Source of the DNA: Hyphochytrium catenoides
Taxonomy: Eukaryota; Protista; Hyphochytriomycota
Length of the DNA: 64,000 bases
Assembly: GCA_900088475.1 (NCBI GenBank)
Contig: FLMG01001143.1
Location: forward strand, 1-64,000
Direction: 5' to 3'
The translations under genes and the position numbers were made by a program. Under the pieces are notes generated by a model. It had not been told where the DNA came from. It saw only the letters and a program-made list of their open reading frames with translations, and did not search any database. Positions 1 to 64,000 of the stretch are shown here, in pieces (the first letter of the stretch is position 1; every line of letters starts with the position of its first letter).

Positions 1-3000
1 AATCGAACCTCCAGTCAGACCATCAGCTGATGTACGACCTGCACGAACGTCGACCATGCCACCGACGGCATCCATGCTGTCTCCAACAGACAGTTGAATC
101 ATGCCCGCAGAACCGGAGAGAGCGTCACCGGAAGAAAGATGAAAAGCACCTGAGGGCCCTGTCGTGGCAAGACCTGTGCTCACCTCCACTCTGCCACTGA
201 CTCCAGATCCCGCTCGCGCTGTGTAAAGTAAAATGTTGCCACTATTTGAGGCAGTACCTACACCCGAGGATAGCACAACGTCACCACCGTACCCACTTCC
301 GTCTGATGTTCCACCAGCGGACAAATAGATTCTGCCACCAGAACCACTATCCCCTAGGCCAACAGTAACGTCAACATTGCCGCCGTGACCACCGAGCGCA
401 TTACCGGTCCCTAAATCAATCTGTCCTGAGGATCCCTGGCTAGAAGAACCCGTAAAAATCCGTATTCTGCCGCTCACCCCATTTACCGCATCGGGAGAAG
501 ACACCACAACTCCACCACTATTTGCAGATGTTCCAGAACCGGATCTGAGGGCTAAAAGCCCACCACTTCCAGAAGCGGCGGAGGTGTCCCCAGAGATAAT
601 ATTTATAGCACCACCGGTTGACAGGGTACCGGTGCCAACCGATAATGTAATAGCTCCTCCACCACCAATAGTAGAGCCACCTGTGGATAGTATGATCGCC
701 CCGGACGTTCCAAAAGATGCCGAGCCACTGCTAATAGTAATAGACCCGCTCACGCCCATTGTTCCAGCATCAGAACTGCCCATGGTAACATAACCGCTGC
801 TTGTGCCATCACCTGCACCAGAGAAAAACTTAACGTCACCTCCCCAGCTAGTCTGACCTACACCACCCCCAACGGACACAGCTCCTCCCTGTCCGCCGGA
901 TGGCCCGTTACCTCTACCTCCCATCAATCTCACGAGACCGCCTGATGTTCCAGCAGCAGTTGTTACACCTGCTGTGATGCTAACGTCGCCGCCACTGCCC
1001 ACAACACCATCCCCGACCTTTAGCATAACATCACCCCCGGCACCGTCTGCCAGGGATGCGCCTGTAGAAAGGTTAATGGAGCCTGATGAGCCAGCAGAAG
1101 CCGAACCTGTGGAGAGAGAAAGTTCTCCACTGACACCGGTGACGCCGGAATTGGCTGTGCCCAGCACAGTATCGCCACTGTTGCCTAATACGCTTGAGCC
1201 TGACAACAAGGTCAAACCACCACCAGAAGCCACCGCTGATAGCCCACCGTGGATGGAGACAGAACCTCCATCACCTTGAGTAGACCCTTTTCCTTCACCC
1301 CCAGTTAGAGAGATAGGACCGCCACCATAGCCATCGCTAAGGGCTTGACCAGCCTTTATCTCGATGATGCCGCCTTGGCCATTGCCGCTGTCCCCAACAG
1401 ATAGTTGCATTGGCCCACCAGGGCCTGACACGGCTCGGCCGGTCGAAAAAAGTAAAGAACCTGACGAATGTCCTAATGCCAACCCACTGCTTAGTACTAT
1501 TCGACCGCTTCTTCCGTTGTTTCCTGACTTGGCTGTAGAGACCAAAATGTCACCACTGCTTGAACTGGCGCTCGCACCTGAAGATAGGGCAAGGACACCT
1601 CCATACCCAGCGCTGTCTGTTGTGGGTCCGGCTGATAGGTAGACGCTTCCTCCATCGCCAATGTCACCACCACCAACAAAGACTTCCACATTTCCCCCAC
1701 TGCCATTCGCTGCAGTGCCTGTTCGAAGACTTATTTTGCCAGATTTTCCTGCAGCCGCGGACCCAGTATGAACAAAGATATCTCCACTAATCCCAGCTAA
1801 AGCGGTGGAGGATTCAACAGTAACAGTACCACTATTTGCAGAAGTTCCAGCGCCGGTTTTCAGGGTAAGATGGCCGCCTCTACCTGATGAAGCAGTGGTG
1901 TCACCAGCTATTACATCAATGTTGCCTCCGAGTCCATCGTTCCCTTCCCCGACAGATAAGGCAATGCGGCCTCCCGCACCTGATAAGGAACTGCCAGTAG
2001 TAAGAACAATTGATCCGGAAGTTCCTACCGTTGCGATGCCGGTGCTCAACGTCATCCAACCGCTCACGCCTGCTGTACCCGCTTTGGCACTGCCAATACT
2101 CAGGGAGCCACTACTTGACGTAGAGCCCTGTCCGCTAACTACTCGGATACCACCACCCCAACTTGTTTCTCCAACACCACCTTCCAGGACAATCTTCCCT
2201 CCGTATCCGCCATAAGCGCTACTACCCAGACCACCATATAAACCAACAATCCCTCCCGACGATGATGTGGAAGTTGTCAGGCCAGCAGTGAGAGTGACAG
2301 AGCCGCCGTCGCCGGTGACGCCATCCCCTACGCTCAGCTTTATGTCGCCACCGACTCCATCGGCCGTGGCTATGCCGCTTTTAACATAAATGGCTCCTGA
2401 AGTCCCTGAGGTGGCTGCACCGGTAGTTACAGCCAGCTTCCCACTCACCCCTTTTATACCAGCATTCGCCGTGCCAAACGCGGCATTACCGCTACTGCTA
2501 CCAGTGCTGGATCCGGACATTAGCGACATGCTGCCACCGTGATCTACCGCAGACAAGCCTCCGCTGAGATATAGGGAACCTCCGACACCTCCAGTGTATC
2601 CTTCCGCTTCACCGGCATCGATGTATATGGACCCTCCGTCAAAAGCATCGCTCACGGCTCGTCCGGCCCTCAGGCTGATAACACCGCCTGAAGCAGCATT
2701 GCTGTTGCCAACATAGAGATGGATGTTGCCTCCCGAGCCGTATACAGCCTCACCACTGGACATCAAAAGAGAACCCGAGGAACCGCCGAAAGCCGTCCCA
2801 CTACTAATCTCAATGAGGCCACTTGCTCCCGACAACCCCCCCGTGGCAGTGTGGACAAGTATGTTGCCGCTATTCAAGGCTGCACCTTGTCCTGAAGACA
2901 GGAGAATATCTCCCCCGGTCCCAACAGCGTCAGATGTGAAACCAGCGGACATCCGCACACGGCCTCCATTGCCTAAGTTTCCGCGTCCAACGGAAACATC

Positions 3001-4624
3001 AACATGGCCCCCCCTGCCATTGCTGGCAAGACCAGTGTATAGACCAATCATGCCAGAGTTGTCTACGCTAGAGGACCCTGAACGAAGCCAGATTGAACCA
3101 CTAACTCCAGCCATGGCATCAGACGACGCAACCTCCACGTCACCACTATGGGTGGACACTCCAGAACCACTTCGCATTGTAAGACGGCCTCCTGTCCGTG
3201 AGGAAGCAGTCGTATCCCCAGATATGATTTCAATATCACCCCCCACACCAGCGGTGGCTTGTCCAACAAATATTCCGATGGAGCCTCCACTACCAGATAA
3301 GGAGCTGCCTGTAGACAGTACGATAGAACCGGAGGTACCTAATGACGCCACACCACTGCTGAGTGTGAGCCATCCGCTGACGCCCGCAGCGCCAGCATTT
3401 GCGCTTCCTATGGTCACAGATCCACTGCTTGTCATTAGTCCGCTGCCAGTCAAAAAACGAAGAGCACCTCCCCAACTTGTCTCCCCTAGTCCACCATTGA
3501 TCCGCACAAACCCTCCCTTCCCCTCATAAGCGCCACTTCCAAGACCTCCTGAGATTGCGACATGTCCTCCGGACGACACACTTGCAGTCGTAAGGCCAGC
3601 TCTGAGAGAAATACTGCCACCATCACTTACAACGCCATGGCCAACGCTGAGATGGATGCTACCGGCTGCTCCGTCTGCCATTGATGCTCCCGTCGCCAAG
3701 CTTATCAAGCCAGAAGTACCAGAAGAAGCGCTGCCCGAAGCTAGCAAAATTGCGCCACTCACACCAGTCATACCAGAATCAGCAGTCGCTAAAACAGCAC
3801 TTCCGCTGCTGCTATCACTGCTCGAACCTGACAAAAGGGTCACTTTACCACCATAGTCCCCTGCCGAAGCGCCCCCTCGAATCGCAATAGAGCCACCAAG
3901 GCCTTGATTGTAACCCTGAGACTCACCTCCGGTAAGTAGAATCGCTCCGCCATCATAGCCGTCACTCAATGTCCTTCCAGCGGTCACTTCAATGACGCCA
4001 CCGGTTGCAAAGGTACTGTCTCCCACTGAGAGATGAATCATGCCTCCTGAGCCCGACAGAGCTGGGCCAGTAGAAAGAAGCAGTGCACCGGACGAGGAGC
4101 TCGTGGCTAAGCCACTGCTCAGCTCGAGTCGCCCACTACTACCAAAAGCGCCAGCTCGAGCTGTGTGGAGGAAGATGCTCCCACTGCCCAGCCCCATGCC
4201 GCGACCAGACGACAACGTGATGTCGCCACCATAGCCACCATTATCGAAGGTGGTACCAGCTGAAAGATAAACGCGCCCACCATTTCCGGAATCCCCTAGT
4301 CCCACAGCGACATCCACATTGCCTCCTCGGCCGACGACTCCCGTACCCGTCCGAAGCTCGATAGGGCCGGAGCTTCCCTGTGACGATGAACCGGTGTGGA
4401 GATGGATGGCTCCGCTTACGCCGCTTAAAGCGTCAGATGACATCAGGTATATTTCACCACTATTCGCCGAAGATCCATCTCCACTTCTCAAAAGTAGTTG
4501 TCCTCCTGTCTGAGAGGCTGCGGTAGTATCGCCAGCGATAATTCCAATATCACCACCAGTTCCCAGATCGCCCATGCCGACTTTGATTAGAATTGATCCA
4601 CCGGCACCGTTTTCGGCTGCTCCA
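1..4624 (-). repeat. Degenerate tandem super-repeat, period exactly 1314 nt (438 aa), ~3.5 copies, continuing off-window
   Basis: The Gly of the (A/S)GDT(T/S)A motif starts at 4533, 3219, 1905 and 591. The Trp of TSWGG starts at 3474, 2160 and 846. Every spacing is 1314. Confidence 0.93.
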
Positions 4625-7600
4625 NNNNNNNNNNNNNNNNNNNNNNNNNNNNNNNNNNNNNNNNNNNNNNNNNNNCGTGACCCGACCGCTAACACCAGAC
4701 GACCCGGATTCAGCTGACTCTATTGCAATGTTCCCACTTTGACTTATGGCACTATATCCCGAGGTAAGAAAGATAGACCCACCCTTTGCCCCAGAGGCAG
4801 ACGTGGTCCCGCCTAGCAATAAAATATCGCCACCATCGCCATCCAAATTAGCCCCCGACAATAAAGAAATGTCCCCGCCCTTACTGCTGGTTGCTGTCAC
4901 ACCGACCTCAAATGTCACGTCCCCAGCTTTCCCTTGCCCGGCACCGCCAGTTCTAAGGACCACATCTCCCGATGAGGATGCTGGAGCAGACCCTGATACA
5001 AGGTAGATTGAACCACTAACACCAGCCGTACCTCCATTCTCGGTTCTAATGTTGACGTCCCCGCTGCTGGTAGACGACCCATATCCACTTAGTATGGAGA
5101 CTTGACCCCCCGTTGAATATAAGCTATTGCCCGCAGATAAGTAGAGAGAGCCGCCGGCACCCGTAGTGGAACCGCCAACCACGACAGAGACACTGCCAGA
5201 CGATCCACTGTTCGCAGTACCTGTAGTGATGATGATTGCTCCCGAGTCTCCCTGTGTAGTGCTTCCAGTTGTGAGTTTAATGGCACCACTGACGCCAGCA
5301 GTTCCTCCGGCTGCGGTACTGATAGTGACGTCTCCACTACTGGTGCTTGATCCGAAACCACTTGTGATAGAGATGGCCCCTCCTGTAGATGTGTCGGAAA
5401 CTCCACCCTCAACGGAAACTCCTCCAGAAACTCCTACCTTACCACGACCAGATTTGACTAATATTGGCCCACTAGAGTTTGCGTCAGAGTCGCCCGTAAT
5501 GATGCTCACACCACCGCTACTCCCTACTTGACCACCCTTAGCTGTAACGATACGGACATCGCCACTGCGTGTAATGGAAGAACTACCAGAGGTCATTAGA
5601 ATTGAACCTCCAGCGTGCATGCTGCTTGTGCCGCCCGCCGTGATGTAAATGTGCCCACCTGTTGAGGCGCCACTCATTCCAACAGAGACGTTGACATGAC
5701 CTGCCGCTATTGCGCTAGTCCCAGTCCCCAATAAGAGCGGGCCAGAGACGCCGCCGCTTGCCTTGCCTGAGGTTAAATTGACAGCGCCACTCCCTCCCGT
5801 AGCGCCGCCATCCGCACTTCGAAGTGTTAGATCTCCACTGACAGAACGGACAGATGTTCCCGTGATCAAAGACACAGATCCTCCTCTGCCGACGAAGCTA
5901 CCGCCACCTACAATACGTACGGCCCCGCCAGCTGCAGGTATTGCGGTAGTGTCTCCTGCTTGAAGCGAGATATCCCCACCGGTGCTGGACGAAGCTGCTC
6001 CAACAGACAAGGAAATGGCTCCAGCTTTCCCCGTCAGGGCTTTCCCAGTCGTCAAACTCAACGTTCCAGCACCAACTCCGGATCCAGCACCGGTCACTAC
6101 AGAGATATTACCGGATGCGCCTGCTTCGCCTCCATCAGGAGTTGACAGTAGAATGTTGCCACTGCTTCCTCGAGAACTGCGGCCTGAGAAAAGGTTAGTG
6201 GCACCGCCAATTGCATGGGGAGCTCCACCTGCTATTAGCGTAACATTTCCGCCTCGGTTGATTCTTGACATTGTGCTGCCGGCATTCACTACGAATTGGC
6301 TACCTCTAGCGTAAGTGGTACTTCCCAGGTTGAATCTCACATCACCCCCAACGTCATAAACTGAGGATCCTGTTGTGAATACCATAGAACCAGCTCGTGA
6401 AGCTGTCGTATTCCCTGAGGTGAAGGAGATATTTCCTGAAGGTCCCATTGGGGAAGGGGAAGAAAGAAGAGATAGCTCTCCGCTCCCACCTCTGGTACCA
6501 TTACCTGACACGAGCGTTAGACCTCCACCGGCACCCTGAGAAGTTGCGCCGGCCTTCACGGACACTCGTCCGCCATTCCCTTTTGCCGTGTCTCCTACGC
6601 TAATATTGATGTCTCCACTGCTACCGTCAACCGAGGACCCTACTAAAAGAGAGATGCCACCACTTTGGCCCGAGAGAGTTCCACCCGTAGCCAGTGAGAC
6701 GCTACCGCTACCGCCGCTCTTGCTTGCCTCTGGAGTGCGCAAACTGATGGACCCACTGTCCAGCTCTGTAGATGTTCCAGAAGTAAGGGAGATATAACCA
6801 GCTGTACCAAACGAGCTTGTTCCTCCAGTTATCTTGATTGCACCTCCTCTTGCTTTACCAGCACCGGCAGCGAGGTGGACGTTCCCACCGAGCCCTTGAA
6901 GGGCCCCACCGGACGACAACACAATTTGACCCGATGCCGCAATACCGTCACCGGTAGCTACCCTCACATCTCCACTGGAGAAACCGCTTGGGGAAGCGAT
7001 CGTCAGATTCCCGCTCTCCTGTGCATGGCTTTGCCCTGAAAAAATAGTAGTGTTGCCACCTGATTCCTTCATGCTACTGCCTGCGCGTATCATAATCCCG
7101 GACCCTCGCTTGTCCCTACTAGATCCTGCGATAAGCTGGATAGCTCCCCCGAGACCACTAACTGAGTCACCCCCTTTTACTGAAATGGTGCCCGCATCCC
7201 CCGATATGGCATCACCACTCTCAAGAGCAACTCCTCCTGTTTGTTCGCCAGTCTTGGACGAGAGTTTTACAACTCCAGAGCGGAACCGATCACTGGACCC
7301 CCCAGCCATTATAGCCACAGAGCCCCCGTTGGCAGTGGAGGAGCTCCCAGCTACCATTGTGATGCTTCCAGCATGTCTGACCGAATCTCCCACTCGAATG
7401 TCAATGTTCCCTGACGAGTTATGGCGACTTATTCCAGTAAGAAGACTGACGTTCCCTGTGTCTCCCAAATTTGACATTCCCGTCTCGATCGCAATAAATC
7501 CCGTCCTGCCCTCGGTTCCATAGGCAGTTTTGAGGGTCAAATGACTGCTCCCACCATAGGAACTGCGGCCCGAAACTATATTTATGCTACCGCCACCTGC

Positions 7601-10600
7601 CCCGTTGCCACCCATGAGAGACAGAGATCCAGCCGGTCGATGGTGAGCTGCTTTGGAGCTATTACCACCTGCCAAAAGTAGATCGCCAGCTGATGACTGG
7701 AACCCAGAAGCTGTCCCAGTCTTGATCTGTACCATACCAGAGGAACCCATCCGTGATTCGGCAGAAATTATCTTTATGTTACCTGTTGCTACGTCGGAGC
7801 TCCCTGTTGTAACTAATACTGCTCCCGATGGTTGTCTTGGGGAGGAACCAGTCTCAAGCCGTGCTTGACCGGATCTTCCACTGTTCCCGGACGCAGATGA
7901 CACCTGAACTGACCCGCTACCTCCAAACATACTCTTCCCGCTTAGGACTAGAACATCTCCTCCCCCTAGTTTTCGGCCTGCGCCTCCCTTGATGAGCACA
8001 GCTCCGCGCCGCTCTGATTGGCCATCCCCTTCGCCCGCCTCAATGGAGACGCTTCCTCCTGAAGCCTCCGTCGAGAGTGAGTTCCCAGAGGCAATTAATA
8101 TAGATCCCCCCTGTCCATAACTGGAGTTCCCGCTAAGAATCTCAATTGAACCAGAGGGCCCTATGCTTGTCCGACCGGAGCGGAGTAGTAATTTGCCGCT
8201 TGAGGACGACGACTCGCCAGTCTCAACCTTGAGACTGCCTGAGATTGCGGACGCTATTGAGGTGGACAGTTTTACATGGCCTGAATTTAGCCCTGTGCCA
8301 GAACCGAGATTTAAGACTCCACCATCACCTGAGATACTTGATCCTGATGATACATTTACTGACCCTCCGAAACCTCTTTCAGTCAGACCAGCAAAGACTT
8401 CCACTGATGCATAAGGCTCCTTGTGGACCTCAGATTGTCCAGTGGTAAGCCGGATTGCACCTGCAGCGGCTGCTTTTCCTGTCGCTACTACAAATGAGCC
8501 AGAAGCAGTGTACCCGTTTCCGGTTGCCAGCTTGATCACCCCTGACGAACCCCTCTGTGATGCACCTGATGTGATAGACACAGATCCGCCACTTCCGGTA
8601 CCTGAGTTGCCAGAGGCTATCCTCACTTTCCCTCCAGACTGACTCTGCGACATCCCTCCCGTCACATCAACGGCGCCAGCTTCGACAATGGGGGATTGGT
8701 TGTCACCTGCTGCAACCTTGATGTGACCCGATTTATAGGCTTCCGTCGTCGTGGACTCTGTGGAGATTACGATATCGCCGGCACTATCAGACCCTGAAGA
8801 TGCTTTCACCATGACCGACCCAGAGCGGGAGGCTCGTCCAGACTCCAAATTAAGATCGCCGGAAGCACCTCCATAAGCAATACCAGATCGCAAGATTATT
8901 GTGCCGCTGGCTGCAGCTTTAGACCCAGAATTGCCTGTAGACATAAGTAGGTCTCCACTTTGTCCTTCCTTGGCCGACCCGGAGCGCAAAGTCAGCGTCC
9001 CGGAGCTCGTCATGGCAGGTCCGCTTGAAAGGCTAACGATCCCGCTATCCCCGCGACTGCTGCTGGCCGACTCAATTAGTACAGGGCCAGAAGCTTGCAA
9101 GCCTGGTCCGCTGCTGGTGGCTACCTTTCCGCCGACTTGAGTTCTGCTTCCTCCTGCGTTAAGGAGTAGATCGCCACCTCTTCCTCTCCGAGCAGCTCTA
9201 TTGGTTGATTCTCCTGCACTAATGAGAACTAGCCCTCCGGATGCGCCAGAGGCAGAACTCCCCATCACCTTCAAAGTTCCGGGACGCTGCGCACCACCAA
9301 CACGAAGCAGCATATTCCCTCCAGTGCCATCTTGAGCATGACCAGTTTCAATAGAGATAGTGCCACTGAGCGCTGCGGTGCCCGACTGGATTTGTATAGA
9401 TCCGCTGCTCAGGGTATCATTGGCAGAGGATAATGTAATCCTTCCAGAAAAAGAGCCTCTTTCGCTTTTGCCCGACACTAGAACAACGGAACCACCGCTG
9501 AGACGGCCAGATCCACCCCTTAATTCTGCGTCCCCTCCCTGGCCGGCGTTGTCTAGACCAGCTCCCCCAAGAAGCTTGACCTTGCCGCCAATATATCCGG
9601 CATTTCCTGCAGCTATAGCTACAGTGGAACCAAGCGCAGAGCCGGAATGCCCAGAGCTGATTCTTACCTCCCCACTATTGCCCTTCGTCGAAGCTCCTGA
9701 GGAGATATGCACATTTCCGGCCCTCTCTCCCTCAGCAGCGGTGTTACCAGAACTTAAAAGAAGCCCACCGCCTCTCGTGTCTGATTTCCCAACTCTGATG
9801 TAGATGGATCCGGAACCATGATAAGCAGGTCCGGTGGAGAGCTGTATGCTACCGCTTCGCGTCGCTCGCCCGGTGGACAATGTTAAGCTACCGGAGTTAT
9901 CCAAACCGCTACCGGACCCAAGATTAACACTTCCAGAGTCATGGCGTGAAGTGCCTGATTGAACTTCTATCGCGCCACTTTTATCCGAAGCGTCACCTGT
10001 CAAGAGGGATACACCGCCACCGTTGCCGTTCGATGAGGCGCCCGCGGTCATTTTGAACAACCCACCATTTAACGCTCCTGAACCAGCAAGTAGGTGAACA
10101 TCACCTCCTTTGCCTAGATTGGAGTTACCTGAGGCAACCGTCACCGAACCTGCCCCTTCAGATCTTGATTCACCAGCCGACAGATATATAGAGCCTGAGG
10201 TGAAAGAAGACCCAGTATGGGCAAGGATGTGACCACTTTGACCAGAGGTACCATTGCCTGTCAGCAGAACCAGGCTTCCTGACTCAGCGCCGTCTCCTGA
10301 CCCTAGCAGCACCTCCCCAGACATGTAATGTTCATTATCTCCTGATCTGACACTCAACCTTCCAGATGTCATTTCTAGGCCGAGCCCGGAGGAAATCATA
10401 ACTCTTCCTCCTTCATGGCCATCGCCAGACGACAAAAGCAGACTTCCACCTCGGGAGCCAGAGCTTTTTGCGTTACCAGAAGATAGGATCACTGCTCCAG
10501 GGGCATCCAGGGCATCACCAGAGCCTAACACCACAGGTCCGGAGCCCAGGTGCCCGTAACTGCCCCTAATAAGGATGCCTCTCGCAACCCCACGCTGTGA

Positions 10601-13600
10601 CTCTCCAGTGGTGATTGATACTTGTCCGGAGCCATGCCTAGAGCTTGCTGATCCCATTGCAATTCTGCCTGATCCCTCAACGTCTTGTCCTTCCCCTGAC
10701 ACTAAGGCTACTGATCCCCCTTCACCTGCTTCACCACTCCCACCACGGATAACGACTATCCCTCCCTGGCCGGTTTGCGATACACCGCCGCCGATGTCAA
10801 CGTTCCCACCTGCACCTCGTTGGGTGCTACCAGCTGTTAGACGTACACTACCTCCGCTGTATAACTCAGAAGAGTTTCCCGCAGCAAAAATTGCATCACC
10901 CCCGCGGCCAGAGTTAACGTTAGAGCCACCGGTAACAACGACGTGACCGCCGGAGGTCCCACGACCTCGAGAGCTGCCAGCAGATATTGTGACCTTCCCT
11001 CCTGACTTTATGTTGGACTTACCCGAGTTAATGACCACGGCACCTGCCGATGACCGACCATCCCCTGTGGACAGTAATAAGACTCCGCTCGCATCAGCTC
11101 CCGCACCTGTAGAGAGCACAACCCGCCCGGAAGTCCCTTCCGCAGCACCACCGGAACCCATTCCGATATCTCCGGTAGAACGTCTGGAGGCGGCAGTTTG
11201 CACCACAATAACGCCAGAGGAGATAGCCGATTGCCCACTTTGGGCTAAGAGCGCGCCGCCATAACTATGCCCAGAAGTATTGCCTGCCTTCAGGTAGAGG
11301 TTGCCAGGGCTCACAGCTCCATTTCCTGAGGTAAGAACGGCGTCGCCTCCAACACGAGACTCAATCGACGGCTCTCCCGCAGAGAGCAAGAGATCACCAG
11401 AGACTCGCGCAGACTTCGACTTGACCGAAACGGTTCCGGATTGGCCCCTGACATGTGAGGAGCTCGTTATCTCGACATTTCCACCTCTACCCTCAGGGTC
11501 AATGCTTCTTGCGGATTGCAACTTCACATCTCCCCCCTGCAGGCCCGCTCCTCCAGACAAGAAAACGGTCCCACCAGTGGATTGGTCGCTGCTACCAGCT
11601 ACCATCTGCAGTGTGCCACCCTTATTCCGACCGGTTGGGCCACCGACCAAAGTAACCGCTCCGGCGCTCATGGCATCTGGACCACGTCCGGCAGCTATGG
11701 TCACAGATGCACCCTCGCCAGACTTGAGATCAACATTCCCCCCACGAGCACCTCTGGAGTTCAGCCGATTGCCACCCTTGATTGTAATGGACCCCGGAGA
11801 GCTATAGCCGTCACCTGCAGCAACCAACACGTCCCCTGCCACATCCTCTATCGAACTGCCCGTGATTAGCTTTAGATCTCCACTTCCTTTTGCGCCTTGA
11901 CCTGTGGCCATAATCACCTTGCCTGATTCGCTTTGTTCAGAATCATGAGATATTATCGCCACATCTCCAGTCCTGCCAAAGCTACTGGCTCCTGACAGCA
12001 GTGAAATCGCCCCACCTACTGCTCCACTCTCCGTATCACCAGCTTGAAGGGAGATTTCACCACCATCACCAGAGGAGGCCTTACCTACAGCTACAGCAAT
12101 CTCACCCCCAGCGCCATCTAACAAGCGTATAGTCAATAACCAGCACCGAAACACTGACCTTGATATAAACAGGGTTACTGACCTGAAGAGTCTCCGGATC
12201 TAATGGATATGACGCCACTTGACCCTCGTGTGGATTGACCGGTCCAGATAGCGATTGGACCAGAAGCACTCTTAGAGGAGGCACCATACCAAGTGCCAGC
12301 GTCAGCTGTGTTGACATGTAGCCCTGCTCCAATCTCTTCTGAGTTTTTCTCGTAGCGATATCGCCTTTGATGTGCTTGGAGCCCAGCCATAACGTCCACA
12401 AGGAGCGCCTGGGTGTCAATCTCATGAAAGTCTCCTAGAGTAAAGTTCTTCTCGGGTAGCTCGTAGTGAGAGACAGTAACGTGCTCAGGAAAAACTTCGC
12501 GCAACTGCTGTGCGATGACCCCTCGGACAAGAATATCACCCTTTCCCCTGATTTTGCGCCATGTCTCGCTATATCTGTATTGTTTCATCTCTATGCCTTG
12601 GAAGCGTTGGTAGATCTCATCTTGATCCATATCTTCAATATCTTCCTTGATTCTTCGATCTGAAGGTGTCATTATCTCCGGTAGTTGTGCTCGAACGTGG
12701 GAAATGAATCTGCATAGAAGATGTTACCGGAGGCCACTTAGAGACACGACGATTATACATGCACCCACCTGTCCTTCTGGAATCTGAAGTTTACTCCTCC
12801 TAAGCTTGCAGCATCTGTGTGGCCTATGAGTACTTCTCCTTCTTCATGGACGGACCGAATATTGACGTTGTACCCTGAGGTTAGCTCCACGTCTGATTCA
12901 TTGGCACTCTTCATAGTAATGCCTCCATCTTCATCCATTCGCATGGAGCCATTCCCTCTGGCGCTTCCAATGAAAACAGCCCCGGAACGCCCGTCGGAAG
13001 TGCTCCCGGCTATAATGGATACCTCACCGGCAAAATGGCCAGACGTGCTTGACCCGCCACGTATTTTTACGTCGCCTCCATTGAGGCCATCTCCTCCATG
13101 TAGCAAGAGGGCACCGCCCGGGCTAGCGTCATTTGAAGACGCTTTAATCTCAACCGCAGATCCCTCGGTCGACGTCGACACTCCAGACTTTACTATCACT
13201 NNNNNNNNNNNNNNNNNNNNNNNNNNNNNNNNNNNNNNNNNNNNNNNNNNNNNNNNNATTCACAGCTACACCTGATATGAGACTTATGGAGCCCCCATTC
13301 CATCCAGCAGAACCACTAGAGAGATGAAGATCTCCTCCCATATGCCCGCCAGAGCCTGCTTTGATGCTTACTAGACCTCCCTGAGAGGATGAGTCTCCCG
13401 CAGTCAAGAGTACAGGCCCCGCTCTGGACCGGGTACCATTCCCCGAATTTAAAGACAGGGCTCCTGAGGAGAAACCTGATGGCGTCGCAATTTGCACTTG
13501 TCCACTTGATGTGCTGCCTGCTCCGGATAGAATCTCAACCGACCCACCGCGGTGGGTATGAGATTGTCCGGCTTGAAAGCTGACAACGCCAGACGTTCCG

Positions 13601-16600
13601 CCCCGCGATTGCCCCGTGCGCAGGCGAACGAATCCGGAAGGGCCATCATTAGTCTCACCTGAAGAAATGTCGACAGGACCAGATTGGAGTCCATCCCCAC
13701 TTGCAAGGGTGACCTCACCAGTTTTCTCTCCGCCAGCACTAGAGATAAAGACCGCTCCCGATTTTTGTTTACCTTTTCCACTTGCAATGGCTAAGTAACC
13801 TCCCTCGAATCGCGCTTCACCTGCTGATAATAGCATCTCGCCACCAGCACCGTATAATGAGCTTCCCGCCCGGATGGATACCCCCGCTCCCTTCGTAGAT
13901 TGCGTGGCCCCTGCCAGCAGACTGATACTTCCAGCAGTCCCGGATGATGCTCCTCCCGTCCCAAGCTCCAGACTTCCAGATCCCTTGCTGCCCTTTCCAG
14001 AGAATATTGCAATATCACCGGAGTAATCGTCACCTCGACCCGAAGAAAGCTGGAGATCTCCCGAACGTAGCGCAGCAGTCGACGCAACCCTTACATAGCC
14101 ACTGGATACGCGTCCTTGTCCACTTCTCAAATCTAACGCTCCGCCTCCCATTCCTTTAGTCGATCCTGCCCCCACTCTAATGGTCCCTCCCAATCCTTCT
14201 TGCGAACTCCCTGCTGATACAACCACCGAACCACCTAGCCCCCTTGTGGCGGAGCCTGCTATAACCTCTACATTCCCTGCTGGGCTCATGCCAGTGTTGC
14301 CACTGGCAATTGAGACGTAACCACTACCGCCTTCCGAGCTTGGAGTACCCATACTAAGCCGGCCGGAAGGGCTCTTTTTCCCCATGCCAGTCTGGATGGA
14401 GACAACGCCGCCTTGATTCATAGAGTCTCCGCCTTGAAGACGAATCTCCCCTCCCGAGCCACCGTTGCTATGGGACGATCCCCCTTTGATTGTGACAAGG
14501 CCGCTAGAAGAAGTCTCTGAAAAGGGACGGCTAGATCCCGCGGTAAGTACCAAAGATCCTGGCACAAATCCATCCCCCGCTACAAGGCGGATGCTGCCAC
14601 CCGTTGAACTTTGACTACCTCCTCCCTCGATGTCCACACCTCCAGCTTGTCTGCCTCCAGAGGCCCCAGAACGAACTAAAACGGATCCCGAATTTGCATT
14701 CAGCGCATTGCCAGTAGCAATGCTCACGCCGCCTGTTGATGCCGATGCAGTGCTGGTACGAGTTTCTAGACTGATTTGGCCTGTTATTCTTTCGCTGTCG
14801 CCACCCAGTAACTGAATACTCCCTCCCTCACCTTGGGTAGAGGTACCTCCTTCGATAAGTACACCACCTCCTCTACGTTCAGTGGCATGACCGCCTTCAA
14901 TGTGAGTCTTACCCGGGGCGAATCCATCAAAGGAACTCCCTGAGCGTACAAACACGGATCCACCAACTCCTTTTCGTGCCGAACCCCCTTCAAGAAGCAG
15001 GTGGCCCATGGCGCCAGTATCAGAGTCGAAAGAGCCTGTGGTGATAGTTACATTGCCACTAATCAATCCTCCCTTCCCAGACATCACACGGACCGAGCCG
15101 CCGACCGCTGATAACCCAGCGTTACCAGCCTGAAGAGAAAGCGTGCCGCCTGCTCCTCCCGAACTGTAGCCAGCGCTGACGAGGATGGCGCCAGCTTTAT
15201 CTGAATATCCTGTCCGAAGTTCAAGATCTCCCGAGGATCTAGCACCTTCAGAACCACCCGTAAAGATATTGATGTTTCCGGAGCCACCTCGCCCGGATTC
15301 TACCGGGGTGGAAAGTCTTATTTTGCCAGAGACGCCAATTCCGCCGGTCTTCCCGGAACCAATATCTATACTTCCACCCTGTGAACTCGCGCCAGCGCCT
15401 GCGTATAGACCTAGGTTACCTCCTAGAGCGAACTCGGATTTGCCAGCGTGTAGCACTATATCTCCCGCATCGCCTAAGGATGACTGCCCGGCGTCTATGC
15501 GAACATGGCCGGTTCGACCTTTCTTAGAGTTGCCGGTCATTAAGGAAATTCCACCAGAGCTGTGATCGGTCGCAGCTGTTTGTAGCACAATCGTTCCAGA
15601 AGTCAGTGTCCTGGAACTCCCAGTGCTCAAAACAATGGAACCCCCAACACTACGCCCTGACCCTCCTGCAGAGAGGGAAAGTCCACCTCCGCTGCGTCCC
15701 GTAGACTTTCCAGCTATAATTTGTACTTCTCCACTGTCGCCCAGCGTAGCATGTCCTGAAGCAATCTGCACACCACCAGTTTGTAAAGCATCTGCAGACC
15801 GCAGGTTGACTCCTCCTGATGACCCCGTCGATACATTTCCTGATCCAATGGTAATAGGACCCGAGGCCCTCGGCCCCGAGCCCGATGAAATTGTGATAGA
15901 GCCGCTTGTTCTAGCGCCAGTACCACTAACGAACTCCAGCCTTCCGCCTTCTTGCTCTTCTAGTCCCTGAATGAGAAGACGAGCGCCTCTACGCCCATCA
16001 AGTGATGAACCCGAGAATAGAGTGATAGAGCCAGACCCCTCTTCGTAAGTACCGGTGGAAACCGATATGGTGCCTCGCTCAAGAGTCTTTAGCTCAAGGG
16101 CCCTGGATGGAGCACCTGCCCTCGAGCCGCGGTATCCAGCAGCAGTCATACTAATCCCACCGCTTTGGGTCCTAAGTGATATCTGGTCTTCCTTTGCTTC
16201 AGTCGCTGAAACGGTTTCCCCAGTCGATACGGAAATCATGCCTGACTCGTAACCTGGTAATCCCTGAGCTGTTTGCAAGAAGATGTGTCCAGAGGAGCCA
16301 GATCTTGAAGCAGGGAGAGTTGAGAGGACGATATCGCCCGATTTTGAACCTGTTCCTCCGCCTCCGCCGCTCGTAATCTCGACGTCACCACCGTCGGAGA
16401 GTGACCCAAAGCCTCCAGCAAGCGAGATTTTGCCCCCTTTAGCGCTACTATGGGAAGTAGGCGTAGTGGAATCTCCACCCCGAAGCTTAACGCTTCCCCC
16501 AGAGCCTTGTTGCCCGGCGCCTCCGTAAAGAAGGAGTTCTCCTCCGAAGCTATCCAGAGCACTGCTTTCTCCAGCTTGTAGAGACAGATTTGCGCCGTGT

Positions 16601-19600
16601 CGGGTGGAGCTAAGGCCACTTCGAATAGTAACATCTCCGGCCTTGCCGCCGTCACCGGAACCCACGTATAGCCCTCCCGACTCACCTGCCACTGTTCCAG
16701 AGGAGATTGATATAGACCCACTTGAAGCTGCTCCAGCGGCACCTGCTGAGCTTATCTCGAGATTACCTGTGGAGCCACCCACCCGCTTCTCCGTAACACC
16801 GGACCGCATAGTAATGGAGCCACCGGACCCATCTGACAGTGAGCTCTTTCCTGCATAAATCTCGACATGACCCCCGTAGCCATTTTGTGATGCTCCCGCA
16901 AGAAGCCTAATTGCTCCACCTTCACCTTCGACTGAGTCACCTGGCTTGAGGTCGATGCTTCCAGAACTAAAAGCCGCACCTGTAGCAATCACGACATCGC
17001 CACTACTTGATGAGTAGCTACTGCCAGTCGCAATGCGTACATGTCCTGTGTTCCCATAGCGGGAAAGGCTCGAAGTAATTGAGAAAGAGCCGGAAAGAGC
17101 ATCTTTCCCACTGGACCCGCCCGATTTGAGGCTGATATCACCCCCTTTGAAGCTATCGCCAGCACTAATGGTGATCGCTCCACCTTTACCCCCCATAGAG
17201 CTCCCGGAAGAAAGGACCACGTCCCCAGCTGGGCCTTGTCCTGCACTGCTGCCTGCTCGTAGAACCAATGCACCTCCAGTTGATGCTGCGGACGCGCCGG
17301 AAAGCAATTGAATGGTGCCTGAACGGCCAACGGTTGAAGAACCCGACCTAACCGTTATTCCGCCGGCGGGTCCTCGAGAGGCATTTCCAGCAGAAACGTC
17401 TACAACCCCTCCCGCCCCGGCGTTAGAGGCACCGCCTATTCGTAGGGTGAAGTTACCAGACGAAGAAGACGAAGAGTCTCCAACAATGAAGCGCATATCT
17501 CCTGAAGGACCATTAGGATTATCTTGGGTTTGGACTTGCAGACCACCACCTCCTGTCTCTCCCCGGGATGTTAGTAGCGAAATCGTGCCGCCTCTTCCAG
17601 CTGTTGCCTGTCCGGAAGCAAATCTGATGTCACCAGCCTTTCCGAGACCTATAGCTGAACCGGCACTCAAGTGGATGGATCCAGCAGAAAGTGGTGAGAT
17701 GCTCCCATCAAATGAGGATCCGCTAATCAATCTTACGTCACCAGCTTTTCCCTGTCCTTCCACCGATCCGGTCGCGAAGTTTAATCCTCCAGTGTCGCCA
17801 TTCTTGGCCTTACCACTAGCAATGATGACCTGCCCTGAAGAACCACTCCGTCCTACCGAGGAGGTAATCTGAATTTCTCCGGACGTCGAAGAGCCGGAAC
17901 CACTGATTAACTGAACGCTCCCACCTGTAGCATGCGACGTACCAGCCCTTACGGAGATATCGCCTCCCAAACCTTCCCAGTCTGACGAAGCTCCTACTGT
18001 CAACGAGATGTTACCAGCTCGACGTCTCATTGAGCTTCCCGTAGACACAAAAATACCACCAGATTTATGTTTGCTGGAGTCGGCGGTGCGGATAACTGCA
18101 CTGCCGCTGCTCGCACTTGCGGAGGACCCCGACTCAAGAACGACGAGTCCTCCACGAGAGATCTTACTACTGCCACCTTTGAGAGCAACCCCTCCGGCTG
18201 GCCCGATAGCACTTCCACCGGTAATCTCAATTGTTCCGGCCTTGCCGCCAGGTCCACTTGCTCTTCCTCCCATCAAAAAAATAGATCCTGCACTGCCTGA
18301 GGCCGTTGTGCCGCTCAGTATTGCTACCTTACCAGAATTACTCCTTGGCCCTGAAGTGGATCCAGAACCAACCACTACCGCTCCTCCGTCGCCTCTTAAG
18401 CTATCGCCAGATTGTATGGCTATTAAACCACCTCTTGATTGTTCAGCTAGCCCTACAGACAACTCAATGCTGCCGGTGACGGCTGCGGCTCTGCCCGTCC
18501 TCAATGTAACACCTCCTGAGGAGAGCTCAGCACCAGATGAACTCAATGAGATATTTCCTCCAGGCCCCGAGGTTATATGCACTCTTCCGCCTGACGAATC
18601 CATGGCTCGACTCCCGGCGTGGATGGAAATTTCTCCAATACCCGAAGTACCAGAGCCAGATTGCAGTTGTAAGTCACCTCCCTTCCCAAAAGTAGACGAG
18701 CCTCCACTGAGCACAACATTCCCAGCGTCCGTTTGCGCAATCCCAGTGTGCAAATGAAGATCTCCCGTCTTGATGGCCGAGCTCTCCCGCGGTCCAGTTG
18801 CAATGTAAGTATCACCCCACCGCAGTCTAGAAGCACCAGATTCTATAATTACGTCGCCACCAACTTCTTCTCCCGGCCCACCGGCCACGAGAATGCTACC
18901 CCCACTAGACCCTTTACCGCCCTCCAACTGAATAGAGGGCCCACTTCTACCGTTCACACCTCCAACGCCAAGGAGGACCTGTCCGTTCTGTTCTCCACGG
19001 CCGGATAATATTGTGACGTCACCGCTAACACTACCTGATCCGGTCACGTCTTTAGTATGAATCTTAACAGAGCCACCCTGCTGTGTGTTGCGGTCACTCT
19101 CGGTAAGAAGCAGAATATCTCCGCTTTTGGAGCCTGCCCCCGTAATCAATTCTAAGCTTCCTGCTCTGCCCTCATGGCTAGAAGTACCTCCTGCACGCAG
19201 TTCAATTCCTCCTGTCTCTCCAGTCTTGCCGCTACCAGTAAGAAGGGCAATTGAACCGGACGGTGCACTCCCTGTAGCTGTTGTTTCCATTCGTATTATA
19301 CTGCTGGAGTTTCTATCCTCTCCAAGGACTAGGCGCGCTGCGCCCTTGTCTCCAAGACTATCCAAGCTCGTAAGCTCGATTCTTCCCTGTGCCGCTGTTC
19401 CCTCTGCATTCATCATTATAGCAGGTGAATTTTGTGTTCTTCCCACGCCTGTCTGAATCCTGATATCCCCGCTGTGAAGCCCAGAGCCCGTTTCTATTTC
19501 CACGTTTCCACTCCGACCTGTTGCGACTCCTGTTACTAGCGTCAATGATCCACCTGTCCCAAACGAGCCGCCGCTTGCCATATGGAGAGAGCCACCCTGG

Positions 19601-22600
19601 CCATTCCCCGAGTTAGTTCCAGCTTTGAGAGTCAAAGAACCTGCGACAGACAAATCAGAAGCGCTATCTCCTGCTTGAACCGCAATATCTCCACTTTTGG
19701 CGTCAGATGACCCTGAAGAAAGAGTTACAAGGCCCGTAGATCCGGCGCCATGTCCCGTCCCAATGCTTAAATCTCCTGAGTGAATGCTGTTGGAACTCTT
19801 GATTCGCACTGAGCCACTAGATAGAGTCCCGGTCCCGGAAGTAATAATTACGTCACCTCCTGTACTATATTCAGAACGGCCGCTGCTCAGCTCCAGGTCA
19901 CCTCCCTTATTATCTGAGGATGAGCCTGTGGAGGCCCCTGCTAATATCCGTAGAAGACCACCGCTAGTTGTTTGGGATCGTCCAGACTGGATGGAAATAT
20001 GACCTGCTTTACCTTTTGTGTTCCCAGTGCTAATAGAAACTCCGCCAGAAGACCCCAGTCCATGACTGTCTCCGGTAGATAGCTCGACAGGTCCAGACAT
20101 TCCACGTTGGGATGAGCCACTGGTCAGTACCAGATGGCCCGAAGTACCCACATTTCCGCCGGTAGATATTGAAATATGGCCCCCCGCATCATCTGCCGAC
20201 TTCCATTGCTCGTTGTCAGAACCAGACGTAGAAATTCTAATTGAACCTTGACTGCCAGCAGCGAGGCCGATATCAGAGCCAAACCCATTGCCTGTGGTGA
20301 GTTGAATAAACCCGGCACCGTCACCAGTTGGGCTGTCCGCTGTGGACAGCCGGATGGAGCCAGAAGGACCATTGATAGCCGACCCAGATAAGAGTTCCAG
20401 GTCCCCTGACTGTTTCTCCGATATCCCTGACTTAACCGTAATCGCGCCAGAGCTACCTTCTCCTGTGGTGGAGGTTGACATAGCGATACGGCCAGAGCCA
20501 TGACTTGCCTGTCCTGATACTATCTCAACCGCGGCAGCATCATCTCCCTCCCCAAGTATAAGGTGAGCACTGCTAAGTGAAGAGTCAGCTCTCCTTAGTC
20601 CGCTCGATAAGCGTATTGAGCCTCCTGCGTCTGACCCACTACCGCCAATCACTTGAACGCGGCCACCTTGATCGCCGAGGCTACGGCCTGCTTGCAGAGT
20701 CAGACTGCCTCCTATCTCCCGACCGCTTGTGCCAACGCTGATTGAGATACCTCCACCGGAAGAGTGGCCCCGACCGCTGTGTAGATGTATGGGCCCACTA
20801 GAACCAAACTCAGATGAACCAGTTTTCAACGCAAGGTGACCCGTTCTCGTCCCTGGTCCGGAATGGTGCACCGACTTAGCTGATTGGATGGTCACAGCTC
20901 CACTTGACGTAATGGCATGCCCAGACTCCATATAAATGGAGCCGCCTTGAGGTCCTTGAGATGCACCAGCCCGAAGGTCCAGTTTTCCGCCTTCTCCCCG
21001 TCCAGACCTTCCGGCTGAAAGGATGACGTTTCCTGAAGAGTCGAAAGCTGATTCACCACTTGAGATTTGAACCATTCCAGTGTTGCCTTTCGAAGGACCA
21101 GTTCGAATATGAATGGAGGAGGATTCGTAAGCCGAGGCCCCAGTCTGGATATCAATTGTGCCGCTACGAGCGGTCTTGGAGACACCGCTTTGGATCCTCA
21201 CCGCACCACCGAGGTGACCAGAGAAGGAGGAGCCAGCCATTACCTCTATGGAACCTGGAACGTTGTATTGGCTGCTACCGGCAGCAAGAGAGACAGACCC
21301 GGCAATGCCCCGAGTGGAGTTCCCAGATTCAAGAACGACTTCGCCTGTGCTGCCAAGGGTAGCTTTACCAGACCCAACTCTCACTCTCCCGGATATGCCC
21401 TCTTGACTGTCGAGAGGAGCAGAAGTCATGCGAATCTCGCCTGAATCTCGTTGTCTACCCGAACCAGACAGGAGGAATACCGAGCCAGGCTGCCCATCAA
21501 CTGTAGACCCTGCACTTAGCAACACTCGTCCACCCCGGCCTTTTGCGCTTTCAGACGTTCCAGCATAGAGTGTCAGATCACCTCCCTTACCTTGAGACCC
21601 CCCTGCGGTAAACAGAAAGGACGATAAAGTTGAGTGGAGCCAAGAGCCTAAGAAGCGCGATAACGACAAACTAGCTCACCTTTTACTTGACCTGCACTTA
21701 TTATCACGGATCCAGCTTGTCCTTCAGCAGATAGGGAACTACCAGCCAGCAAAATGGCGTCACCCCCTCTTCCTAAATCGCTATCCCCACCTTGTAGCCG
21801 AAGAAGTCCTCCGGATGAGGCCTTTGCGGCTCCAGCGTGAAGGAGTACGGACCCTGACGCTTTCGAAGCCTTGCCACTTTCTAAAGATAGAGAACCACTG
21901 TTACCTTCATGCGATACCATAGTGCTAAGGGATATGCTTCCCGAAACGCCTTCCGTCCGACTTCCACCAGAAAGGAGGCTGATGCCACCTCCAAGTGACC
22001 TCATGCTTGAAGATGATGAGCCAGCTCGGATGGTGACACTCCCGCCTTTTAGACCGCCAGTCGCGCCGACATTCATAGTAATACTCCCAGACTGTTCTCC
22101 AGATCGCCCAACTTCAAGCATTAATGATCCGGATCTTGCTCCGTCTGCTTTGCCTGTTCTGATATTAACCATGCCACTTGGACCTGAATGAGGTTGATCG
22201 CCGCTGGCAAGTAAGACCGTGCCTCCGCCACTCTGCTGGCTAGTGCCACTAAGGATACTAATGGCACCGCCAAATCCTCCGACCGAAGAACCTGCCCGAA
22301 TAAGGACCTTGCCTCCTATACCAGAGGCAAGACGAGTAAGCAATAAGGTTTATTCAACCCAGGAAAACAGTACCCACCTTCGGATCCACTTTGAAAGCCC
22401 GCGGTATCTCCAGCTTGCAGGTTGATGCCTCCACCATGTCCACCACCAAGACTGCCTTTGTAGCTATTGTGCCCAGCGCGGATAGACACTTCGCCCGCCT
22501 TAGCAGGTGCATGAGTAATCCCAGCTTGAAGCTCGAGTACCTTGCCCTCGCTAGATTCTGAAGCCCCGGATTTGATTCTAATGCCAGCAGAGCCCTGTGT

Positions 22601-62574: not shown

Positions 62575-63316
62575 TGCGTGGTTAAGCAACCAACTGGTTG
62601 GTGATTGAAACAGGCAAATGAGCCCAGACGACTGAGTCACGGCAAGCTTCAGATAATCGTCTCGTCCGGTGAGGCGATGGCGCCACTATCCTTGAAGCCT
62701 TTATTCTTGAGTGCGTCCTAGGCCGCTGACCTTCCTCCTCTGAGTAAAGGCCTTTACTTTCTTGTCGACAGATTCTGAGGTGTGGGGCCAGCGCAGAAGT
62801 TTGGACCAGCTTCGCGCCTTCTTTTTCGTCTTCTACCCTAATATAAGGAAGCTTGAATTATAATCGGTTAGGACCTCTAGTTTTGGTAAATAGCTCAACT
62901 CTGTCTACTGAGAGCTGATTGAGAGTACAGTAGTGCCACAAAAAGTATTCTCCGCCGCAGCACTTCGTCTTACAAGGACTGTCAAAGCGGTTATTGATTC
63001 GTAATCTCGGCTATATCCCTGCTGTAAGCTGACCATTCGGACAGTCCCTGGAAAAGAGCCTTACCGTTACCGGTACGGCATGGCCTTGTTGTTCCCACTG
63101 CGGAAAAGTGAAGGGAAGCGGGATGTTGGCCCTAGTTGGGCAGCAGGCTGGACGTGATGAGTCTTCGTCTGGAAGCTTCGCAACGCATCCTTCCAAGGGC
63201 ATCTTCCCATATCGTGTGCCTTCCTCCTCCATGCTGCAGGGTAGAAACTGAGGTTAATAGCCTTAAGGAAAAGATCCTGTTATACTAGGTCTACAGCTGG
63301 CAGGGGGCTGGGCATA

Positions 63317-64000
63317 ATGCTGGCGGGCCTCTTCAATAGTCTCGGGTTCAGCAAGGAAGCGGAGGAGCAGGAGAATCGCCGTTCCTCCATAGCGGAAGAT
63401 GGAGAGGATGCTAGACCCCGGTCGACTACCTCTTCCATCGAAGGCAGTGACTGGTCGTCTTTCGGTGCTCAGCTTCGCCGCCGTCGCGGAACGAGCATAG
63501 CGCATTCAGAGATGGCCAAGTTGGAATCGGAAAGAAGAAGAGACGAAGAAGAGACGGCCCAGCGTACCCTGGAGCTAAAGATAGAAACGCGCCTGGTTGA
63601 CGAGACTCGAAAGGAGATCAATGACCGCGCTCAGCAATTGAAGACGGTTTCGACTCTCTCTGCCCTTCTTGCAGGATTTACGACGACGAACATGGTAGAG
63701 ATTAGCTTTCCAGAAGACCTATCAACCTGGATGTACCTTCTTTTCGGCGTAACTGCTGCCGTAGGGGTAAGTGAGCACTATCAGGAGGGAAATAGAGGCT
63801 GCGACCAGGACAGCGACATTGATCAGAATGGTTTGAGACGATATCCGTGGCAGAAGAGGTTTCGGACAAACAGTTGGATCAGTACAGACGGTAGATGGAA
63901 AGTATGATGCCTCTAGGAGCAGGTGGAAGCAAAGACTTAAGGCTAATGAGCTTCTTGTCCAGATGAGCCTGCTGGTGCTAGCGATGGTCAAGAGTTCCCT
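63317..64000 (+). CDS. Orai-family (CRAC) calcium channel subunit, paralogue B, 3'-partial
   Basis: RAQQLKTVSTLSALLAGFTTTNMVEISF...LLFGVTAAVG, then intron 63767-63962, then MSLLVLAMVKSS. The intron position matches paralogue A. Confidence 0.82.

Follow-up and report, generated by a model that had tools for sequence, protein, structure and literature searches.

The exon at 12709..12183 on the minus strand of the window, the 64,000-nucleotide stretch of Hyphochytrium catenoides DNA analysed here, encodes a full-length Peptidase_S74/ICA domain. This module lies in the middle of a fibre protein of this stramenopile protist, predicted to be secreted and at least 9,000 aa long. On balance, we favour a role for it as a working ICA module within the fibre, one that would trimerise, set the register of the upstream fibre and cut the chain before its serine.

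The S74 Module and Its Fold

Read in the frame proposed in an earlier note on this DNA, the 527-nt exon (12183..12709, minus strand) has an in-frame part of 175 aa (12184-12708) and translates as ...PEIMTPSDRRIKEDIEDMD...ALLVDVMAGLQAHQRRY..., followed by Gly/Ser-rich repeat to the exon end. Pfam PF13884 (Peptidase_S74) matches the exon with an E value of 1.8e-13 and 51 bits, covering profile positions 1-58 of 58; the curated cut-off is 22 bits, and the module thus belongs to the family by its own threshold. The ICA/Peptidase_S74 core occupies 12355..12669 (exon residues 14-118), where PF13884 aligns with residues 16-78 and PHROG tail-fibre profiles with residues 14-118. Direct translation gives all four residues of the S-D-x-R-x-K motif. 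The Ser codon (12661..12663), a conserved column, encodes the predicted nucleophile and predicted new N-terminus (Pro|Ser). The Asp-x-Arg segment follows at 12652..12660 (Asp codon 12660-12658, Arg codon 12654-12652), the motif Arg being an oxyanion stabiliser (PMC3742443). The Lys codon (12646..12648), five residues after the Ser and likewise a conserved column, encodes the predicted general base of the dyad.

A PDB sequence search returned the ICA domain of MYRF (7dc3, E 1.4e-5) as its sole real match. The AF2 model of the module, a monomer prediction made from an alignment of 59 relatives, reached a pLDDT of 84, with values above 90 in the core and a long helix at exon residues 99-116. When the PDB was searched by fold with this model, the only matches at E<1 were 7dc3, 3gud, 3gw6 and 4uw8, all of them ICA or ICD structures, and 7dc3 was the best solved match here too (E 5e-7, TM 0.68 on the target). 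A fold search of BFVD gave 185 matches at E<=1e-3, those with names being phage fibre, tail or S74 proteins and algal-virus proteins. Pfam, fold and translated motif together bear out the S74/MYRF-type domain with an intact Ser-Lys dyad that the earlier note had described. All Pfam, PDB and fold searches were run exon by exon, none spanning an exon junction. No second S74 module was found within the 64-kb window, and a further terminal copy is possible past its edge. Beyond the helix, the segment at 12184..12354 (exon residues 119-175) forms a transition into the fibre repeat that relatives match through residues 172-174; conservation is lower here (mean top share 0.36-0.44), and AF2 pLDDT is 62-68.

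Gene Structure Around the Module

Two predicted GT-AG introns, both with in-phase junctions, flank the exon, and relatives align across both junctions. The upstream intron (12710..12768, minus strand; 59 nt, GTGGGT...CAG, acceptor AG at 12711-12710) is crossed contiguously by the relatives P0007, P0013 and P0035. The downstream intron (12118..12182, minus strand; 65 nt, GTCAGT...TAG, donor GTCAGT at 12182) is crossed by P0014, which aligns over the 12183/12117 junction. These introns agree with the earlier assignment of the domain to an exon of its own. Skipping of the S74 exon would shift the frame of the downstream fibre, because its 527 nt do not make up a whole number of codons.

Retention of intron 12182..12118 would place a stop two codons into the intron, and the main product might then end after the module as a classical C-terminal S74 protein, with the downstream fibre then belonging to another gene or to an alternative isoform. 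A C-terminal S74 is indeed the norm in phage families and among more distant matches, but this intron is canonical, in phase and similar in size to the other introns of the gene, and P0014 reads across its junction. The downstream frame has no start of its own, neither a Met nor a signal peptide being present in its first ~65 residues, and intron-less relatives read on from the module, unbroken, for over 1,400 aa of fibre. We therefore regard a retained intron as a decidedly unlikely account of the main product.

The fibre on the N-terminal side begins, counting away from the module along the minus strand, with a last upstream fibre exon (12769..13200) that resembles the N-flanks of relatives and ends at an N run (13201..13257), on whose two sides the reading frame differs. 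Upstream fibre continues at 13258..27036 in four long stop-free stretches of 675, 904, 233 and 2,806 codons, with in-phase GT-AG candidates at every frame change. The predicted N-terminus (27200..27840, minus strand) has a signal-peptide-like hydrophobic stretch after the Met and two PSI-like Cys-rich exons, one of which (27412-27200) matches PF01437 (PSI) with an E value of 6.2e-6 and the other (27709-27416) weakly; the PSI-tipped N-terminus claimed earlier is thereby supported. On the C-terminal side, downstream fibre at 4676..12117 (minus strand) comprises 2,479 codons without a stop or N and keeps a 15-residue period. Further downstream fibre (1..4719, minus strand) is stop-free from 4719 to 1 over 1,573 codons in another frame, overlaps an N run at 4625-4675 and runs past the window. 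The resulting totals of ~4,850 aa upstream and >4,200 aa downstream of the module assume that the protein continues across both N runs (13201-13257 and 4625-4675), and they are conditional because these runs coincide with changes of reading frame.

The position of the two N runs at frame changes is what a decayed or mis-assembled locus might look like, with the S74 domain as a relic, and one relative locus, L003, which looks cellular rather than viral or toxin-encoding, does contain four in-frame stops and two frame changes. Against such decay stand more than 9,000 stop-free codons within the exon frames of the window, canonical introns and a catalytic motif that is intact and near the family pattern, so that a relic is very improbable. 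As a separate observation, positions 1-28000 of the window have higher GC and GC skew, which fits Gly/Ser/Ala-rich coding.

Fibre on Both Sides

The fibre on either side of the module is 22-25 % Gly and 15-19 % Ser, with an identity autocorrelation that peaks at lag 15; within this 15-residue period there is a 7/8 sub-period. The equal composition and period on both sides substantiate the claim that the solenoid fibre resumes after the helical tail. Pfam found no family in any of the long fibre ORFs, and a 705-aa piece of fibre found no match when searched against PDB sequences. The upstream fibre is beta-rich with its 15-residue repeat; AF2, run on 305 aa as a single sequence, reached a pLDDT of only 51. 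The fibre repeat is equally compatible with an intertwined triple beta-helix and with three single-chain beta-rolls, each of 15 residues per turn, joined as a trimer. No TM-like stretch was detected in the visible part downstream of the module (19-residue windows, Kyte-Doolittle >1.6).

Relatives in Stramenopiles

Uncharacterised stramenopile proteins annotated as "Peptidase S74 domain-containing" share 40-53 % identity with the window protein over the whole exon, the return to fibre included. Phytophthora infestans PITG_01491 (XP_002908152.1), Aphanomyces astaci RLN75429.1 and Achlya hypogyna OQR97563.1 likewise have period-15 G/S fibre on both sides of the module. With at least 40 % identity, a fibre restart, period-15 flanks, and a signal peptide and PSI, the window gene belongs to this PITG_01491-like giant fibre family. 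The relatives differ from it in three respects: their database models are short and fragmentary; the module at the oomycete locus has no flanking introns, whereas two are predicted in the window gene; and some relatives have two or three modules per gene, compared with the one visible in the window.

Internal placement of the module is not an artefact of gene modelling, because relatives read through it uninterrupted. In the P. infestans reference genome (L002, 9287-15142), one stop-free stretch of 1,952 codons consists of fibre, S74 and then 1,467 aa of fibre; P0001 holds three modules inside a single 1,767-aa ORF; and P0241 continues for ~1,930 aa after the module. These uninterrupted frames uphold the internal position proposed in the earlier note. 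Across 150 representatives, a G/S-rich flank of at least 60 aa follows the module in 50. Literature searches on PITG_01491 and the genes next to it, and on a "triple beta-helix" in oomycetes, yielded nothing relevant, and no paper was found that uses the phrase "chaperone of endosialidase" together with stramenopile names. The internal layout is common to the potato-blight and crayfish-plague oomycetes and is described in no paper that we found.

The motif columns are well conserved among aligned relatives, with Ser in 44/58, Asp in 54/58, Arg in 56/59 and Lys in 51/59. Over the family as a whole, Ser is present in 90 and Lys in 100 of 112 modules, and both are kept in 90. In the other 22 modules the Ser has been replaced, mostly by Ala, and 10 of these retain the Lys and the remaining fold. 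Two three-module genes, L001 and L003, both with a PSI-type N-terminus as in the window gene, read S, A, D and S, S, A at the Ser position, and the last module of each is Ser-less. L003, the one relative whose C-terminus is visible, ends in a non-repeat domain with no TM-like stretch and no further S74; this terminal domain matches no Pfam family and is absent from the window and from the other loci.

Comparison With Known ICA Proteins

Phage tailspike and tail-fibre ICDs (endosialidase 3gw6, GA-1 3gud, T5 pb1 4uw8; PHROG 1980, 6921, 5668 and 5481) share the fold, the motif and the association with a fibre. Phage ICDs are C-terminal and are discarded after folding (PMC3742443), and the PHROG tail-fibre profiles have their S74 match at their C-terminal ends only, which supports the contrast with phage domains that had been drawn earlier. 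These domains end the protein, whereas >4,200 codons of fibre follow the module in the window gene. The architecture is therefore not that of a phage-type C-terminal ICD.

In MYRF, cleavage by the Ser/Lys dyad depends on trimerisation, and the C-terminal fragment retains the ICA (PMC3742443). The ICA of MYRF and MrfA is also internal, and the C-terminal product of the window protein would keep its ICA likewise. In contrast to these ER-membrane transcription factors, the window protein is predicted to be secreted and fibrous. Pfam found no NDT80/PhoG-type DNA-binding domain in the upstream ORFs, and the part of the downstream region that lies within the window, short of the C-terminus, has no TM-like stretch, in keeping with the contrast to the TM anchor of MYRF made in the earlier note. 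Membership in the MYRF/MrfA group was rejected on these grounds, and apart from the ICA domain the window protein is unrelated to MYRF.

A further known system, close by description, is that of the giant protist glycofibril proteins, which combine giant Gly/Ser-rich short-period repeats with an ICA. They include the TLP-12 candidates, Amoebophrya proteins of ~20,000 aa with a C-terminal ICA, and form extracellular triple beta-helix fibrils (bioRxiv 10.1101/2025.09.30.679562). TLP-12-type proteins are alveolate, have a period of 12 (dodecapeptide GSxxSx7) and carry the ICA at the C-terminus, whereas the window protein is from a stramenopile, has a period of 15 and carries its ICA internally within the window; neither the period nor the visible ICA position is that of the TLP-12 type. 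Polinton-like viruses, too, have an S74 associated with eukaryotes; it sits on large, modular fibre proteins as a single C-terminal copy, together with laminin-G, collagen or adenovirus-fibre modules (PMC12220804). The window gene differs from them in its predicted introns, its cellular neighbours and the absence of any laminin-G, collagen or adenovirus-fibre module by Pfam. A viral-element origin of the locus was rejected on the basis of the spliced gene model, the cellular neighbours and a GC content and GC skew of 1-28000 that fit coding.

Proposed Mechanism

In the mechanism that we favour, three precursor chains would associate through the module, and the trimeric module would set the register and nucleate the trimeric beta-structure of the N-terminal fibre, as suggested by solved ICDs and by MYRF. 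After folding, the Ser/Lys dyad would cut the bond before Ser 12663-12661, a Pro|Ser cleavage that we infer from the conserved residues. The N-terminal product would be a PSI-capped fibre of ~4,850 aa per chain. The C-terminal product would carry the ICA trimer at its head, as the MYRF fragment keeps its ICA, and continue as the same fibre for >4,200 aa. The "shedding switch" suggested in the earlier note is without support; the C-terminus of the protein lies past the window.

Conserved residues are no proof of activity, and internal modules can exist without cutting, because the Ser is missing from 22 of the 112 modules in the family. The module might instead be a non-cutting node for trimerisation and registration, aligning three very long chains at the middle of the fibre, with the protein staying uncut. 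The Ala-type losses in which Lys and fold persist, together with the Ser-less last modules of L001 and L003, imply that non-cutting internal modules are maintained in the family. The window module, however, keeps all four motif residues, the joint presence of Ser and Lys in most modules points to selection on catalysis, and every studied ICA with an intact dyad cleaves (PMC3742443). A non-cutting node is thus possible for the window module but rather unlikely, and a cutting module is the reading that we prefer.

The downstream fibre of L003 ends without an S74 of its own, and the folding of that half is not explained by the proposed mechanism. Drawing on this fibre without a C-terminal chaperone, we tentatively suggest a broader reading, to which we give a low chance. 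ICA modules may be two-way assembly nodes in mid-fibre that fold the N-terminal fibre and also head and nucleate the C-terminal one; modules that keep the Ser would make one programmed cut, splitting a single translation product into two different extracellular trimeric fibres, and Ser-less modules would be permanent joints.

Significance

Three settings are known for self-cleaving ICA domains: phage and virus fibres, which carry them C-terminally and discard them; MYRF transcription factors; and, very recently, giant protist fibril proteins, which bear them at their ends. In the window gene the domain lies inside a single fibre, with a long stretch on either side, a layout that extends to oomycetes, including major crop and animal pathogens, with tandem copies and natural catalytic-dead variants. 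Ser-less and Ser-bearing modules form a natural series for separating the chaperone contribution from that of the protease. The two-way node, if true, would represent a eukaryotic fibre polyprotein without a described counterpart. In reference annotations, that of P. infestans for example, giant fibre genes of >4,000 aa appear in pieces, as small "hypothetical" models. The family also represents a class of very long extracellular stramenopile fibres that has so far gone unstudied.

Identity of the S74 Module and Its Exon

Sequence, fold and motif all place the module encoded by the minus-strand exon 12709..12183 in Peptidase_S74. Pfam PF13884 (Peptidase_S74, "chaperone of endosialidase") covers it over the full profile (E 1.8e-13; 51 bits, cut-off 22), and the MYRF ICA domain (7dc3, E 1.4e-5) is its sole meaningful solved relative by sequence. 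An AlphaFold2 model built from 59 relatives has a mean pLDDT of 84, with blocks 2-11 above 89. All matches at E<1 in a fold search of the PDB were ICA or ICD domains, namely MyRF 7dc3 (E 5e-7), GA-1 3gud, endosialidase 3gw6 and T5 pb1 4uw8. A viral structure library returned 185 matches at E<=1e-3, those named being proteins of phages (fibre, tail or S74) or of algal viruses.

Translated in the frame of the earlier note, the exon reads ...PEIMTPSDRRIKEDIEDMD..., and the Ser-Lys dyad described there is intact, with the Ser codon at 12663-12661 and the Lys codon five residues further on at 12648-12646 (minus strand). The S-D-x-R-x-K motif has its Asp and Arg as well. The helix-rich part closes with ...ALLVDVMAGLQAHQRRY, after which the Gly/Ser-rich repeat returns ahead of the exon end. 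The exon is flanked on the minus strand by an upstream intron of 59 nt (12768..12710; donor GTGGGT, closing AG seen as plus-strand "ct" at 12710-12711) and a downstream intron of 65 nt (opening at 12182 with GTCAGT, closing AG at 12119-12118). Frame is kept at both junctions (2 bases + 1, and 1 base + 2), in agreement with the proposal that the module occupies an exon of its own, followed by more fibre. The exon length of 527 nt is not a multiple of three, so that exon skipping would throw the downstream fibre out of frame; retention of the downstream intron (12182..12118) leads to a stop two codons in.

The Giant Gene Around the Module

Long stop-free stretches succeed one another on the minus strand between ~27,900 and position 1: upstream fibre of 675, 904, 233 and 2,806 codons, a last upstream exon of 148, the S74 exon (175), and downstream fibre of 2,479-2,549 and then 1,573 codons leaving the window, with the C-terminus of the gene beyond the window edge. 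All fibre stretches are rich in Gly (22-25 %) and Ser (15-19 %), and their autocorrelation peaks at lag 15 with a sub-peak at 7/8, equally on both sides of the module. Searched exon by exon, they matched no Pfam family and, by sequence, no solved structure. The 5' end opens with a Met and a hydrophobic stretch resembling a signal peptide. Two Cys-rich PSI-like exons (PF01437, E 6.2e-6 for one and a weak match for the other) come next and bear out the PSI-tipped N-terminus proposed earlier.

Candidate in-phase GT-AG introns of ~40-70 nt are found at every frame change of the gene. Two N runs, at 4625-4675 (51 bases) and 13201-13257 (57 bases), coincide exactly with reading-frame changes and may conceal introns or be sized assembly gaps. 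Continuity of the gene across both is likely, and it is assumed in the proposed fibre lengths of ~4,850 aa upstream and >4,200 aa downstream of the module. The totals themselves cross the two unreadable runs.

The remainder of the window carries ordinary eukaryotic genes, recognized by family matches as a GMPPB/hexapeptide ORF (30273-30740, minus strand, adjoined by an N run of 72 bases at 30201-30272), an LRR ORF (38440-39288, minus), an aldehyde dehydrogenase ORF (61621-62640, minus) and an Orai-1/Orai-like ORF (63317-63907, plus). The closest named matches of the aldehyde dehydrogenase are brown-alga and Tribonema proteins (Choristocarpus, Tribonema; 56-59 %), an affinity that points to an ochrophyte-like stramenopile; its top match overall is an unnamed sequence (72 %). 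GC content is 0.53-0.56 over positions 1-28000, with a plus-strand GC skew of ~-0.2, and 0.45-0.52 with skew near 0 over 28000-64000. Minus-strand coding rich in Gly, Ser and Ala fits this contrast better than foreign origin.

Relatives and the Internal Position

The internal position of the module is independent of the splice model adopted for the window. An exhaustive profile-free search with the S74 exon recovered 357 proteins at E<=1e-3 (111 at E<=1e-10), the best of them 40-53 % identical across the full exon, return to fibre included, and contiguous alignments of relatives cross both window introns. Named relatives are oomycete "hypothetical" or "Peptidase S74 domain-containing" proteins from Phytophthora infestans (PITG_01491), Nothophytophthora, Aphanomyces astaci, A. 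euteiches and Achlya hypogyna. G/S-rich sequence continues for at least 60 aa past the module in 50 of the 150 listed representatives; the classical C-terminal position is found in the most distant matches, which are environmental, several from marine Tara samples.

Continuation of the fibre past an internal module, as claimed for the window, recurs in relatives. In the P. infestans reference locus L002 (DS028119.1, 1906220-1927568), one 1,952-codon stop-free stretch carries 375 aa of fibre, then a module whose motif is the same, then a further 1,467 aa of fibre with period 15. In the public annotation this locus (847-15610) is represented by two models, one of 2,616 aa and the other the 392-aa PITG_01491; as DNA it reads as a single giant fibre gene, at least 4,600 aa long, that runs on to an assembly gap. 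Among relative proteins, P0241 extends ~1,930 aa past its module, P0002 has two modules, and P0001 has three, ~380 aa apart, in one 1,767-aa ORF. The same internal module, lacking Ser and followed by ~800 aa, occurs in P0109 (RYE85057.1; 1,168 aa, "tail fiber domain-containing protein, partial"), labelled as from a Methanosarcinales archaeon MAG; either a eukaryote has contaminated this bin, or the internal-module layout is also carried by a prokaryote or virus.

Two further loci, L001 (10994-13627) and L003 (8300-10936), each encode three tandem modules ~370-390 aa apart, with S, A, D and S, S, A, respectively, in the nucleophile column; they come from sister assemblies and are not independent. 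L003 appears to contain a complete family gene (2238-18192), in which PSI domains, ~2,000 aa of fibre, the three modules and ~2,400 aa of fibre are followed by a non-repeat C-terminal domain of ~130 aa. This domain matches no Pfam family, nothing in the window corresponds to it, and neither a further S74 nor a TM-like stretch lies past it. Decay or poor assembly may explain the four in-frame stops and two frame changes of this copy.

Catalytic Residues and Predicted Mechanism

Ser and Lys are both kept in 90 of the 112 family modules in which the motif is covered. Ser is lost in the other 22, to Ala in 18 of them, and Lys is still kept in 10. These naturally Ser-less modules suggest that a module can go on serving as a chaperone or joint when it no longer cuts. 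Such a role is also the main rival to self-cleavage for the window module, which would then itself be a chaperone or joint that does not cut. The one module visible in the window is of the intact class.

Catalysis in the ICA domain relies on a Ser-Lys dyad, with an Arg stabilizing the oxyanion; these residues are correctly placed only once the domain has folded and trimerized, and it chaperones the triple beta-helix on its own N-terminal side (PMC3742443). Cleavage of MYRF yields two trimers, the ICA domain staying with the C-terminal one (PMC3742443), and ICA-carrying giant repeat proteins of protists form extracellular, glycan-coated triple beta-helix fibrils (bioRxiv 10.1101/2025.09.30.679562). 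By analogy with this chemistry and these fibrils, self-cleavage in the window protein would begin with three precursor chains coming together at the module, which would set the register of the upstream fibre, nucleate it and then cut ahead of Ser, giving two fibres, an N-terminal one capped by PSI and a C-terminal one headed by the ICA. L003 lacks a terminal chaperone, so folding of the downstream fibre may fall to the module, working in both directions, or to nucleation by the C-terminal domain. The three chains of the fibre may intertwine into a triple helix, or each may fold by itself into a 15-residue beta-roll.

Comparison With Known Systems

The earlier note had set the module against phage, where the domain is C-terminal, and MYRF, where it precedes a TM anchor, and both contrasts hold. 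The phage-type ICD is C-terminal and discarded, and the six PHROG tail-fibre families matching the module do so only at the C-terminal end of their profiles, whereas the window module is internal. MYRF is defined by a DNA-binding domain and a TM segment; the visible part of the window protein has neither, with no TM-like stretch beyond the signal-peptide-like one. The TLP-12-type protist proteins are alike in kind to the window protein but differ in repeat period, lineage and ICA position. No paper was found on a stramenopile giant-fibre S74 family. The S74 domain and its chemistry are already known; what has not been described is its placement in mid-fibre, its tandem arrays and its natural dead variants within a conserved eukaryotic giant-fibre family.
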